64,000 bases of DNA from Octopus sinensis (Eukaryota): the NCBI RefSeq assembly GCF_006345805.1, contig NC_043004.1, positions 83,142,001 to 83,206,000 on the forward strand. The letters are read 5' to 3'. Position 1 is the stretch's first letter, and the number at the start of each line of letters is the position of its first letter. The translations under genes were made by a program, and so were the position numbers. Below the pieces are notes generated by a model. It had not been told where the DNA came from. It saw only the letters and a list, made by a program, of their open reading frames with translations, and did not search any database. Shown piece after piece: positions 1-60,096 of this stretch.

Positions 1-469
1 CGCACACACACACATATACACACAGAGGCTGGTTTTCTTTGCATGACAATCGTTTGAACTTCTTTATATATGTATACTATAAATCTTAGAGAGACTTCTC
101 TCTAAGAAATTCACAAGTGCTGATATGAAATACATCTGTGAGTTTTGCTTCAGCAAAAGCATTTTCTGAGAAATAGCAGCAAACGTCTACTTTTCTTCTA
201 ATATACAAAGAAATGTTTATCTGTTACATATTGTCGTAGAAATAGAAATGAGGGTTAAATATAGTAATTAATTTCGAAGCAGAGAATTCATTTGTTCGAA
301 TGTATAGTCATATATTCACACTATTCTACAAACGCACGCGCGTACACGCGGACATCTCTCTCCCTTTCTCTCTCTCTACCTTTCTTTTTCTCTCTCTCTT
401 TCTGCATATATATATACGCATGTGTGTATGCATACATACACGCACATATGTATATACAATATACATACC

Positions 470-665
470 GGCGAGCTGGCAGAACCGTTAGTACGCCGGG
501 CGAAGTGCGTAGCCACGTTTTTTTAGGTTGACTTTGCCTTTCATCCTTTCGGGGTCGATGAATTAAGTGCCAGTTACGCGCTGGGGTCGATGTAATCGAC
601 TTATCCCTTTGTCTGTCCTTGTTTGTCCCCTCTGCGTTTAGCCCTTGTGGGTAGTAGTAAAAAAT
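470..665 (+). mobile_element. tRNA-derived SINE, family A (internally deleted copy)
   Basis: Core gactttgcctttcatcctttcggggtcgat recurs at 16156-16385, 30200-30349 (-), 35700-35860 (-) and 58240-58430. Confidence 0.75.
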
Positions 666-1028
666 ACATACATACATACATACATACATACATACATACA
701 TACATACATACATACATACATACATACATACATACATACATACATACATACATACATACATACATACATACATAATACATACATACATACATAATACATA
801 CATACATACATACATACATACATACAATACATACATACATACATACATACATACTACATACATACATACATACATACATACATACATACATACATACATA
901 CATACATACATACATACATACATACATACATACATACATACATACATACATAATACATACATACATACATACATACATACATACATACATACATACATAC
1001 ATACATACATACATACATACATACATAC
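664..1028. repeat. (TACA)n microsatellite
   Basis: About 90 units with occasional 1-nt deletions. Confidence 0.98.
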
Positions 1029-1420
1029 TATATACTTTTCTGAGTTTTGGCGTACGTTTATAAGAGTTCAGATACAAATGGTTTGAGATTATATTACCGT
1101 GTATAGAAATATTGTAAAACGCTAATGTTTGAATGAGAATAACATAAACGATTTAGCAGCGGTTTTGCTGTAAACTATAATTGGACAGAATTCCATGAGT
1201 GGATTCCTTTTATGTGTTTAAATGTACACTGTATTTTATGAGTAATACATAGTCTTTGGACTAAATGTTTACACGCTAGGCCACTGGAAGTGAAAATTTC
1301 TATTAATTTCTATTTTTTCCATTCGATATGATTAAGTATATATATATAAGTAATCCCTCTCTCTCTCTGTCACTCTCTCTCTCTCTCTCTCTCTATATAT
1401 ATATATATATATATATATAT

Positions 1421-1570
1421 ACGACGGATTTCTTTACATCTACCAAATCCACTTAGAAGGCTTTCATTAACCCGAGGCTATACTAGAAAACACTTGTCCA
1501 AGGTGCAATGTAGTGGGACTGAACCTGGAATCGTGTGGTTGGGAAGTAAGCTTCTCACCACACAGCCACT
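1421..1570 (-). mobile_element. tRNA-derived SINE, family B, 5' part
   Basis: Homologous to 13280-13550, 21383-21745, 35165-35563 and 55232-55560. Head gtggctgtgtggtaag...ggttcagtccc carries a B-box. Confidence 0.75.
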
Positions 1571-55560: not shown

Positions 55561-58239
55561 TTATCGTATATAACTGTGTATATATATATATATTTATATA
55601 TATACAAATACATATACATGCATACACACACACACACACACACCACACACACATACACACACACACACACACACACACACATATATATATATATATATAT
55701 ATATATATATATGTAAGGAGTATATATATATAATTGCGCTCGTGTTTACACATATGATGATAAATTTATCGATATGCATAGCGATAAAGATAAACTCGAA
55801 AATCTACTGTTCGTGCAAAAATATAAAGTTCAACCGTTAACATGGCCACACCTTTACGTATTATTACAACCTACTACTGAAAACAACGAAATACTAACTG
55901 ATTAGAACTATGCAGACAAACACACACACCTAACACATAAATTAGTTTATCACACTAACAAAAGTAGAAAAGATATACTGATATATCTCAGCTCCATTCA
56001 CTTGTGTGGATCCATTTACGTTTGCGATTAGTGAGACGTATGATAATTTCTGATAATTGGTATTGCAGAATCGTGATTTGACAAACATAAAATGGTGTCT
56101 AATTAATTGTTTCCCCACTTCGAACTGGAGCGATTGATTTTGAAGATAGTCTAATATGTATCCTGATTGCTTCATCCAATAATCCCTTCACAGCAGGTAT
56201 TAAACGACCTCTTAAATGATTGTTTTCAATCCATGTCTGTAAATATATATATTAGCAGTTATATCCTCTCAGTTGTAATCCGGCACTTCAATATGGAATT
56301 AGCTAAGCTGTGATATGAAAATGTAAGAAATACGTTACATGGCATTCGCAGAAAGGTCTTGGATATGACTACGCAGAGGGGTCCCAATTTTCTTGCACGG
56401 TAGTGGCGAACGAAAATAAGCAAGGGCGTGAACATGAGCACAATTTTCAAATATACAGCTCTAGATTGTCCTAAAAATGATGAGGATCACTCAAATTAGA
56501 AAATAGACCATAAAGACAAAGTAGCGACAGCGGTGACAATAGTCCAATCAGTGATATGAAGACTGTACAAAAACAATAGAATAACAGACCTTGAAAGTTG
56601 CCGCAACGTCACATACGGACTAAAAGATGACTCTGCTCAGCACAGCCCGCTAAACCTTCTCGCTAGTTCAATTTATCAGCGCAGCTCAAACAGCTTATTC
56701 TTTGCTTATAGGCAGAAGCTCTAAAAATTCATCACTGTTAAAATTGATTCAAATCAGATAAGAAATATTCCAGGGAATCACTATTATTTATACAAAACAA
56801 ACTACTTTATTGACAAAGAAATATAACACTGGGAAACGATAATAACAAAAGCTGCCACCTACAGCATTAAATAGTTGTGTATGTAAATATAATTCTACAT
56901 TTCTGAATTTGATTGTTACATGTAAATCAGGAACATAAAAGAAAAGCTGTTGGGGCAGTAGACATCCTCATAAAACTGTAGGAAATTTGATGGTAATAAG
57001 AAAGTAGGAGAATACGAAGAATAAGAAGAAAGGCCAGATAAGGCGAATGTATAAGATTAATTTTAACATGGTATATCAAAACAGACTACTATTAATATAA
57101 TGAATAATATTTAAAGAGAGTCAAGACTATCGAAAAGGTTGCAAGACGCAAGGAAAAGTTTAGGAAAATAAAAATAAGAAATAAGTGGAAATTTTACCGA
57201 TGAGTGTGTTAAAATATAGGGCACAAAAGGAAAATACCTCTCCCCATACACAACAAAATTTGCTTCAACACACGAACTCATATAAGGAATCTTGCAAACC
57301 AAATCCAAAAACGAAATATTTAAGGAGATTTTGCTCATTAATAACGATTTCTATTAATATTTAAAATTATGATATATTTGTGCAGCTTTAATATCGTTGT
57401 TTGTTGTACGTTGTAAAGAACAACGGTTTGTCTGCGGTTATTTTCAGTACCGTATCAGATGTTTGCATAAGATGTGCACTAAAGTACACCCTGAAATCTA
57501 CTAGAAAAAGAATAACTGTGAGCAACTGTCATAGGAGAATTTACTGAAGCCTTTTTAGAGATAAGGATAGAGCAAAACAAATACGTTGGTATTATAGAAA
57601 AGGAGTTAAATTAGAATATTAAAAGAATGAAAAACAGTCACAAATTCTTAAAGTAGATGTTGCTGTTGCCCCACCATAATATGCATAAATGTAATACAGG
57701 AATACATACAAGCATAAATAAACACATACAAACACACACACAATCATATATATATATATATATATATATATATATATATATATATCAAAGTTCAAGGAGA
57801 AAGAGAAGATAGATTAGCCTATCACCCTCCCAGTCAGGCCAATACATATTCCTTTTGGGAACGGTGTATCACGCGTAATAGTAATTAGTAGTGCGTCGTG
57901 TAAATATTTTCTTTCCTCCTATTTGGTTATAATATATATCCAACGTGCAATTTCCTTTTGTTTACTAAATTTTTCCTCATACATTCAGAATTTAGGGTAG
58001 AAATTTAACTTTTTCCTCTACAAGTATGTTTCCGTTACTAACCCAACTTATCTTCGTAGGACCATATCTATGAATTTACCATTGTTTACATTTTGGCTAT
58101 CGTCTCTGGTTTCCATGCTATTATGTCTAGCATTTGCATTGCCCTGTCTAGCTGCTGTAGGAATCGTAACATCTGTCTCCCTTCCATTGCCTGCTTTTTT
58201 GGGGTGGTTGTTTCCCTGACATTATTTCTAAATGTGTTA

Positions 58240-58430
58240 GTAGGTCGAGCGAAATGCTTAACGATGTTTCGTCCGCCGTTAGATTATGAGTTAGAATTCC
58301 GCCGAGGTCGACTTTGCTTTTCATCCCTTTGGTATCTATAAAATTAGTACCATTTACGCACTGGGGTCGATGTGATCGACTTAAACCCTTCCTCCAAAAT
58401 TTGAGGCTTGTGCTTCCAGTAGAAATGATT
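58240..58430 (+). mobile_element. SINE family A
   Basis: gtcgactttgcttttcatccctttgg core. Confidence 0.7.
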
Positions 58431-59136
58431 ATTTCTAATGGGGTGTTGAGGATCCTTCTAGGCCGGCTATTTATCTTTCTGACTCTATGTGTGTGCTAGC
58501 TTCCATTATGAGCATTATTATCACAATTGTTTCTACCAATTACATTAGAGTTGTCTCTTGCGGTCTGGAATTCAGATATTCGCCTAGCAACATCTAATCA
58601 AACTTGTCAACAAACCCAATTCTTTTATACGCCGCTTCATACAGTGTGAATACAATTTTGACTGAGACTAAGAGAAAAAATAACACACCCTAAGAATTAC
58701 AGCATTTATTTAAGTCACAGAAATTTCCCCCACCTGATCCACAACTGGCTATATTTTAAGATGTAACTTCCTCTAGTACACAAATAACAGCTAAGAAAAC
58801 TGCACGCACCAGTCAAGGAACTCAAGAAGGAAGTAAAGATTTTTGTAAACGGAGACAAAACCGCTATTTTATAATACTTGGTCTATAATCTACATCAATC
58901 TCCGCTTAGAAAAGAGATCCCAAAAGCTACAAATTGGCACATACAAACAAGCTGATTAAAATTTGCAGGTCAAGAAACTAGTGGTGAAGTTAAATTTGAG
59001 GTTTAGATTTACAAGTAATGGACCTTAACTACCAAGAACCTTAAATAAACCTGAGAGACAATAAGCCTAACTTCACTATTAACCTATGAATACCTATATC
59101 AAAACGTGATCCATAAAGATAAATAATAACACTTAC

Positions 59137-60096
59137 TGATCGGTTTAAACGAAGTCCACACCAAATCATTCCTATGCAATAGAGCATGTAAGTTATAAAC
59201 TTCAGTAGCATATAAAGGTGTACATAGGGAGCAGATTTAAAGGAATTATTTATCATTCCATACGTGGCAATACAGCTGCTTATTATATTAGCAAGGACGA
59301 TAAATCCGGATGATATCTGCAGTGATTCGTTCACAAATCTCAGTATTGCGCTTAGAGTATCGTGTCTATTACATATTTCTTCAATCCCTCTATGTGTCTT
59401 GAACATAACAGTCTTATCTGATTGTTGTTCTTTTAAGCACTTCTGGGCCTCATTCGCCACTTTCTTAAACTCATAAATAAGTGTAAGACTGATTATAAGA
59501 TCAAAATAGAGATCGAATAACACAGTCACCAAAGAGAAACCATTGAAGATGAGTTGTATTGTTAAAACTGGAATGTAATATGTATTATTTGTTGGTACAG
59601 GAAATGTTAAAAACATAAGAATATCGCTACTGCAGAGCGGCAAAATAAGATCCATACACACATTGGAAATGACAGACACGGATATATATACAAATAAAGT
59701 TGTATATGAAAATATTAAATTACAGTTATAATATTTTTTACTTTCCTCTTCAATTTCAAGATCGGCGAATTTTTCAAATAGTTGCTTGTCGTTAGAATCC
59801 CTGAAGAGTTTCACCAAACAGAAGAGTGCTAAGAAACTCCTGTAGAGAATTATGTAACAATACACAAATATTCCACTAGCGTTAGCATTTTGCAATTGTA
59901 TTAAAGTCACAATATGCCGAATCGGGTTTACAATCAAATATATAATGTACAATAAGTAAATTGCAGAGAAACAAATTACTTTCAAATCGAATGTTTTCAG
60001 GATGGATTTATTCATAATATATTTCCGAATATTACTAATTTTTCGATATAATTCCAACATTTTAAACAATTGTGTTTGTTTTGCATCCATACTCAT
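59137..60096 (-). CDS. GRL first coding exon, cassette 6 (320 codons from the first ATG, intact)
   Basis: ATG at 60096 (MSMDAKQTQLFKMLELYRKI); the ORF-track start at 60159 is a GTG. Motifs LTFPVP, YEFKKVANEA and ICNRHDTLSAILRFVNESLQ. Ends WCGLRLNRS|GTAAGT. Confidence 0.8.

Follow-up and report, generated by a model that had tools for sequence, protein, structure and literature searches.

Candidate Variable First Exons and a Single Set of Seventh-Helix Exons in a Gustatory-Receptor-Like Gene of Octopus sinensis

Introduction

Members of the gustatory receptor (GR) and gustatory-receptor-like (GRL) superfamily are expected to measure about 350-500 amino acids, to span the membrane with seven helices and to hold their N-terminus inside the cell (PMC7746228). 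How might such a receptor be built from exons that encode six transmembrane (TM) helices and then stop? This question is raised by 64,000 nucleotides of the Octopus sinensis genome (CM016866.1:83142001-83206000), referred to throughout as the window, in which a series of long paralogous exons, here termed cassettes, is found on the minus strand, as are all of the genes that we discuss. An earlier note on this DNA, made from the letters alone, had proposed that the cassettes are variable TM1-TM6 first exons that share their TM7 exons in the manner of Drosophila Gr28b, and this proposal is supported by the occurrence of one TM7 set per array and by existing gene models. We consider it probable that the window holds the 3′ half of one complex GRL gene, LOC118764607, composed of variable first exons and a single block of three constant exons (A, B and C), together with the start of the next tandem unit. 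The anatomy itself, its conservation in a second species and its recurrence in three paralogous units are documented below at the level of sequence.

Four loci were compared with the window. Locus L002 (O. sinensis GCA_006345805.1, CM016866.1:83161909-83269117, reversed) is 107 kb in length, carries LOC118764607 and matches the window exactly for 60-base samples taken every 4 kb, such that window position x corresponds to L002 position 127118-x. The others are L001 (O. sinensis LOC118764608), L003 (O. bimaculoides LOC106880719) and L004 (O. sinensis LOC118764606).

Cassettes That End at the Same Codon

Translated searches (tblastn) with the five long open reading frames (ORFs) of the window recover six paralogous cassettes on the minus strand, which share 42-50% identity in pairwise comparison, and one inverted partial copy. 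Four of the six (c1, c2, c3, and c5) possess their own ATG and a frame that remains intact up to the donor. The rightmost, c5 (59137..60096), opens with the ATG at 60096, encodes TM1-TM6 in 320 amino acids, closes with the phase-0 donor A|GTAAGT after 59137 and is 100% identical to L002 67019-67981. Nearest to the constant exons lies c3 (40266..41243), with 326 amino acids and the phase-0 donor G|GTGAGT after 40266. The constant exons are followed downstream by c2 (17772..18728; donor GTAAGT) and c1 (2495..3448; 318 amino acids; donor G|GTAAGT after 2495), the latter having an intact relative at 84% identity in Logan assemblies (P0003). The remaining two are pseudo-exons with retained donors: c4 (53700..54653; donor G|GTAAGC after 53700) is interrupted by an in-frame TAA at 53886-53888 (codon 262), and c1b (14178..14900; donor G|GTAAGT) keeps an ATG but has lost about 100 amino acids and contains both a frameshift and an in-frame stop. 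The observation in the earlier note is thereby confirmed, with the addition that two of the six cassettes are pseudo-exons.

Hydropathy assigns six hydrophobic segments to the cassette, with none to spare for TM7, and each cassette ends in phase 0 at a homologous codon (...R-L-N-R-S, or ...L-H-A-A in c1b). Accordingly, the earlier description of cassettes with their own ATG, on one strand, encoding TM1-TM6 only and ending with a phase-0 donor at an identical codon holds up under tblastn and hydropathy, and the donors are exactly as listed there: GTAAGT in c1, c1b, c2, and c5, GTGAGT in c3 and GTAAGC in c4. The pattern extends to the four related loci, where the homologous donor codon is kept in 23 of 23 further cassettes, one of them with a GC donor (GCAAGT), and it is far beyond chance. 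Upstream of the cassettes we noticed no conserved acceptor, without having searched formally for one; for this reason, the use of a cassette as an internal exon seems unlikely.

A Single Set of Constant Exons

Where, then, is the seventh helix? A database search with c5 returns O. sinensis proteins that run past the donor codon with the sequence ...VHSIT(Q/R)SIHYMQFQ..EVVAKILVFLNRLTTESHGIDVGGCFVITPSSTLTMIGSFITYILVVIQTK.., and this C-terminal tail occurs once in the window by tblastn, on the minus strand, in three pieces. Exon A (35930..35998) encodes VHSITRSIHYMQFQDIKPEVVAK between an acceptor with a pyrimidine-rich tract and TAG| and the donor |GTAAGC, and is in phase 0 at both ends. Exon B (31959..32048), likewise in phase 0 at both ends, encodes ILVFLNRLTTESHGIDVGGCFVITPSSTLT between the sites ACAG| and |GTAATT. 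Exon C (29909..29965) encodes MIGSFITYILVVIQTKSL followed by TAA and contributes the membrane part of TM7 with its TY.....Q motif. Taken together, the three exons complete the last intracellular loop and add TM7 (TYILVVIQT), and they are preceded by three phase-0 introns, the last of which falls just before the TM7 motif. Their splice sites are conserved in three loci.

The motif deserves some caution. The TM7 consensus (T/S)Yhhhhh(Q/K/E)(F/L/M) is regarded as diagnostic but not as definitive (PMC7746228), and TYILVVIQT agrees with it in the T, the Y, the five hydrophobic residues and the Q, while its last residue is T and not F/L/M (three of four defined positions). Spliced products of 377-397 amino acids present seven hydrophobic segments, six in the cassette and one, at 374-395 by hydropathy, in exon C.

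The constant exons sit between c2 and c3, that is, downstream of c5, c4, and c3, at a distance of 4-23 kb from their donors, and upstream of c2, c1b, and c1. We infer that c3 and c5 would serve as first exons that use A-C at 35998-29909; c2 and c1 would belong to the next unit, with constant exons further to the left. The earlier note had placed the shared exons left of position 1, which is wrong for c3-c5, whose set is inside the window, and may yet hold for c2, c1b, and c1. Its reading of the spacers was correct in that no block encoding the third intracellular loop and TM7 recurs there, as profile, tblastn, blastn and regular-expression searches all bear out, but it missed the single A-C set at 29.9-36.0 kb, which lies in the 18.7-40.2 kb spacer that it did not name.

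The obvious competing explanation would make every cassette a gene in its own right, with private TM7 exons, short and diverged, in the downstream spacer, given that exons of this size are easily missed. A profile was built from the C-terminal regions of six relatives, some only 27-41% identical, and run without filters against all six-frame stop-to-stop fragments. This search of the spacers for TM7 returned exons A, B, and C (E 1.5e-7, 1.7e-17, and 2.2e-8) and no private exon for any cassette, the next best match having an E-value of 1.7. No decayed copies of the constant exons were detected in the window by blastn with the exons and their flanks. A relaxed regular expression for the TM7 motif gives eight hits in the window, of which only that at 29947 is real. 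Among the others, SYFLITIKF at 57009 is on the right strand and in the spacer downstream of c5, and was rejected as it has neither a profile score nor upstream partner exons. Moreover, the related arrays show the same imbalance: a single constant set accompanies eight cassettes over 97 kb in L002 and five intact cassettes plus a fragment in L001, and L003 combines five cassettes with one forward set. By these searches, no cassette has helix-7 exons of its own, and we consider separate genes with private TM7 exons very improbable.

Equally little credence is given to the view that transcripts read through the donor and end there, yielding six-helix proteins without TM7. ORFs of this form have indeed been called on short Logan contigs (P0002, P0003, P0004, P0009, and P0010); however, their tails past the donor differ in length and have in common only the V-S that is encoded by GTAAGT itself. 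The donor is conserved in every cassette, and the constant region that would be dispensed with is the only strongly conserved block of the family.

Exon A also offers a choice of acceptor. A second, internal site (TTTCAG|GAC), 42 nt on, drops 14 codons and produces a short form (35956-35930); the long and short forms correspond to the annotated isoforms X1 and X2, and both acceptors are used in O. sinensis and O. bimaculoides models. The internal CAG is conserved in three loci, and the 14 optional residues fall just after helix 6. Directly upstream of the first acceptor, in the position of the polypyrimidine tract, there is a (TTA)n tract at 36016-36070.

Family Membership and Predicted Fold

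Cassettes alone give no meaningful hit in Pfam, and the family became apparent only with the constant exons included or by way of relatives. Once c3 is joined to A-C, the product matches Pfam 7tm_7 over profile positions 31-367 of 370 with 21.2 bits (E 2e-4), which is below the 26.6-bit cut-off. Two isoforms that contain the constant exons of the window exceed this cut-off (P0005, 30.3 bits; P0006, 27.4 bits), and the relatives P0023 (31.7 bits), P0020, P0029, and P0024 (81.9 bits) score 31.7-81.9 bits. The clade is small, with members from octopuses and one cuttlefish that fall into 19 clusters (50% identity) among 1.84 billion.

An AlphaFold model of P0008 was obtained with a predicted local distance difference test score (pLDDT) of 74 and a predicted template modeling score (pTM) of 0.69; its long helices match the segments given by hydropathy, and the boundary of the cassette coincides with the end of the sixth of them (288-319). 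A Foldseek comparison with the Protein Data Bank (PDB) places insect odorant receptor (OR), Orco or GR structures at 16 of the 17 top matches, including AgamOR28, AaegOR10, Orco, MhOR5, Gr43a, Gr64a, and BmGr9, with probabilities of 0.98-1.0 and TM-scores of 0.43-0.56, the E-values being only 3e-3 to 0.3. No match came from a profile search of PDB sequences. The 7tm_7 scores, the predicted fold and the three phase-0 introns near the 3′ end establish that these proteins belong to the GR/GRL fold and family. An intracellular N-terminus, and with it the inverted topology, is implied only by the predicted fold match.

Gene Models and Related Loci

Viewed as a whole, LOC118764607 extends over 87 kb with eight cassettes and one constant set. 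In L002 the cassettes begin, in order, at 9989, 25443, 28326, 47238, and 55759, followed by c5 at 67019, c4 at 72444, and c3 at 85875, and the only constant set (91120, 95070, and 97153) is downstream of all eight. Every cassette except c4 is open and carries the same donor at its end. Automatic annotation already connects the two classes of exon: isoforms X1 and X2 (XP_036361417 and XP_036361418) start at cassette 1, X3 and X4 start within cassette 2, and all four end in the A-C exons of the window, which are the 3′ exons of this gene (exon A is its annotated exon at L002 91120-91188). X1 and X3 differ from X2 and X4 by the choice of exon A acceptor. Cassettes 1 and 2, the modeled first exons, fall beyond the right edge of the window, at a distance of 65-81 kb upstream of exon A.

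In O. sinensis there are four copies of the c5-type cassette (L002 28326-29288, 47238-48200, 55759-56721, and 67019-67981), at 88-90% amino acid identity, accompanied by two inverted fragments that lie among the cassettes (L002 53466-54042 and 64832-65557). The second of these corresponds, on the minus strand of L002, to the inverted partial copy of the window (~61501-62286, plus strand), a dead fragment without a donor that comprises the first half of a c5-type cassette and is 86% identical to c5 residues 1-150. O. bimaculoides has a single copy, and the amplification is recent and lineage-specific.

The same order of parts is encountered in O. bimaculoides. LOC106880719 (L003) contains cassette 1, cassette 2, one c5-type cassette, c4 and c3, followed by exons A, B, and C, and its donors and splice sites are conserved. 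A few kilobases upstream of the functional set, L003 also bears inverted extra copies of exons B and A (50545-50921 and 52741-52809, minus strand), of which O. sinensis has none. At a distance of 363 kb in O. sinensis, LOC118764608 (L001) combines five intact cassettes and one fragment with a single constant set, and its isoforms X1 and X3 join cassette 3 and cassette 5, respectively, to the same constant exons. The divergent LOC118764606 (L004), 43.9 kb to the left of the window, is made up of two intact cassettes and three phase-0 constant exons; the O. sinensis model uses cassette 1, and the O. bimaculoides protein A0A0L8FL56 (“Gustatory receptor”) matches cassette 2 followed by the same tail. 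The second LOC118764606 cassette (L004 24278) is intact with a GC donor (GCAAGT), and its ortholog is nonetheless spliced to the constant exons in an O. bimaculoides model.

Different cassettes are thus joined to the same constant exons in automatic models of three units and two species. Each array in the window, L001, L002, and L004 comes with a single constant set, and L003 has one forward set plus the inverted A and B. At least four units are found on one O. sinensis chromosome, each with 2 to 8 first exons.

Selection and Decay

No annotated isoform of LOC118764607 starts at c3, c4 or c5. This observation could be taken to mean that these three are dead relics stranded in a long first intron, and that only the annotated upstream cassettes are used, in which case the window would be devoid of working variable exons for this gene. 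The stop in c4 is in keeping with such a view, as are the ratios of nonsynonymous to synonymous substitution (dN/dS) of c3 and c5 between the two octopus species, which are 0.66-0.81 within a cassette range of 0.42-1.31. Nevertheless, c3 and c5 are open over their full length, with start and donor kept in both species; the nearest O. bimaculoides copy of c5 is intact at 79% amino acid identity, and the c3 ortholog is intact there as well. In c3, the c5-type cassette and cassette 2, 9-12% of bases differ between O. sinensis and O. bimaculoides, and yet no stop or indel has arisen; at that density random substitution left the frame open in only 1.2-2.2% of trials per cassette (trials covered c3, c5-type and v2, with v1 left out on account of a one-codon indel), that is, a no-stop chance of 1-2% each for c3 and c5. 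The intron beside c3, in contrast to the indel-free c3 and c5, shows 28 gap columns in 600 between the species. Chemoreceptor transcripts are rare, hence a missing annotation is weak evidence of disuse. On balance, we regard the interpretation of c3, c4, and c5 as relics as unlikely, if less so than the alternatives considered above.

For c4 itself, decay is evident. Its TAA is at codon 262 in O. sinensis and at codon 107 in O. bimaculoides (L003 32075-33034), and the frame is otherwise largely preserved, with one local disruption in the O. bimaculoides copy; the stops differ between the species, and the decay is therefore independent and recent in each.

The constant exons have been held far more tightly. 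Between LOC118764607 and LOC118764608, A-C show a dN of 0.044, a dS of 0.45 and a dN/dS of 0.10, and 65 of the 71 constant-region residues are identical, as opposed to 38-60% amino acid identity for cassettes. Exon B stands apart within this block. Between the same two units it differs at 2 of 90 nt (dS 0.085; window 31959-32048, L001 47649-47738, and L003 57231-57320), where exons A and C have a dS of ~1.2, and exon B compared between species has an ordinary dS of 0.13. The near-identity between units could reflect gene conversion over a short tract, or else constraint acting on the RNA.

Proposed Mechanism and Its Difficulties

Under the arrangement that we favor, one gene with variable first exons and a single A-C block, each cassette would be transcribed from its own start site. 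A cassette would enter the mRNA only as the first exon, and each would therefore need a transcription start of its own. The donor of the transcribed cassette would be joined to exon A, and all cassettes downstream of it would be removed as intron. The resulting receptor subunits would carry the same TM7 on different TM1-TM6 bodies. In the solved insect OR and GR channels, the ligand pocket is formed among helices 2-6, and helix 7 lines the pore and helps to form the cytoplasmic anchor and the tetramer. Because of these roles, “one pore helix with several ligand-binding bodies” would be a fair summary of the octopus locus by analogy.

Several points weigh against this reading. Being automatic models, the NCBI and UniProt products could partly rest on protein homology, and the protein collection is without any product, spliced or unspliced, that contains c3, c5, c2 or c1. 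The helices of the constant region are poor in the AlphaFold model (322-337 and 354-372, pLDDT 40-57). The high dN/dS of the cassettes may signify that some are under weak constraint. No promoter motif was recognized, as no 8-mer is common to more than four of ten upstream regions and those that are shared are AT-rich, although this was a crude test. Lastly, a constant set for c2, c1b, and c1 is absent both from window positions 1-2494 and from the 10 kb that flank LOC118764606 upstream; these two searched stretches are separated by the 43.9 kb between the window and L004 (CM016866.1:83098123-83142000).

This last gap, along with the want of any c1 or c2 product on record, leaves some room for the proposition that c2, c1b, and c1 are orphans of a partial duplication, or additional upstream first exons of LOC118764606. 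However, c2 is paralogous to the first cassette of LOC118764607 (67% identity) and c1b to its second, which suggests that a whole unit was duplicated, that it continues to the left and that c2 is its first cassette. Further, c1 and c2 are intact, c1 has its intact relative in the Logan assemblies, and the interval that could accommodate a constant set falls outside the searched sequence. We judge the orphan or LOC118764606 alternative to be rather improbable, while according it more weight than any other.

Comparison with Known Systems and Significance

The closest parallel is Drosophila Gr39a, in which large exons encode six TM segments with their own start codon and donor, three small exons encode TM7, and occasional pseudo-exons occur, the large exons having decayed or duplicated in particular lineages (PMC2204066). 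The octopus locus matches every one of these points: own start, six TM segments, donor, three shared TM7 exons, and decay and duplication of cassettes. The Gr39a model, in which each large exon has its own start and is spliced to the shared exons (PMC2204066), is also the mechanism that we propose for the octopus. Gr28b and Gr23a are named with Gr39a as genes whose alternative 5′ exons are spliced to common 3′ exons (PMC2204066), and they too would give receptors that differ in TM1-TM6 and share TM7. The differences from all three are the same. The octopus belongs to a different phylum, and its GRL clade was seen here only in cephalopods; its locus is much larger, with eight cassettes over 87 kb, transposon-filled introns and at least four units on one chromosome; and expression has been shown for Gr39a, whereas the octopus locus is known here from sequence and gene models. 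Among insect gustatory receptor genes, alternative large first exons with shared TM7 exons are a known but rare arrangement, and the isoforms of Gr28b have separate promoters.

A more distant likeness is with the clustered protocadherins and UGT1A of vertebrates, where variable first exons that have only a donor are spliced to a small number of constant exons tens of kilobases away, also in tandem units. These are unrelated protein families, and the constant part in the octopus is a membrane helix and not a cytoplasmic tail. Protocadherin clusters are defined by a conserved promoter element in front of each variable exon, and our crude search found no such element in the octopus.

The device itself is therefore known from Gr39a, Gr28b, and Gr23a, and the automatic NCBI isoforms already embody it for LOC118764607. 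In a literature of which our coverage is incomplete, we found no account of it in the GRLs of cephalopods, of other mollusks or of any other non-arthropods. Several consequences follow for the study of these receptors. Outside the arthropods, too, the ancestral arrangement of introns in the family is well suited to this solution. Cephalopods have more of these receptors than counts of GRL “genes” suggest, since LOC118764607 alone could give seven, and the annotation is to be corrected for the intact first exons c3, c5, c2, and c1, which are in no model. To our knowledge, in-depth work on octopus chemosensation has been confined to the nicotinic-like chemotactile receptors, and the present locus provides that field with concrete, testable junctions.

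It is tempting to extend the argument to all cephalopod GR-like receptors. They might be organized throughout as variable/constant arrays of the Gr39a or protocadherin kind that arose independently of those in insects, eased by the ancestral 3′ phase-0 introns, with promoter choice placing one ligand-binding body per chemosensory cell on a common TM7. We offer this only tentatively and incline to doubt it; were it true, it would represent a form of receptor diversification that, as far as we have found, has not been described for the superfamily outside arthropods.

Sequence Surrounding the Exons

With a G+C content of 27-48%, microsatellites and retroelement ORFs, the window resembles the genome of an invertebrate animal. 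Two ORFs, at 48278-49735 and 19868-20569, have no match in Pfam. Long microsatellites or low-complexity runs are located at 321-1077, 3657-4214, and 10131-10751, in addition to the tract at 36016-36070. The spacers are occupied by transposon remains at 43214-46406 and 23540-25009 on the minus strand and at 28235-29047 and 19868-20569 on the plus strand. These include a long interspersed nuclear element (LINE) with endonuclease and reverse-transcriptase ORFs, a second reverse-transcriptase fragment with zf-RVT, and, immediately downstream of exon C, a fragment of a Mos1/mariner-type transposase.

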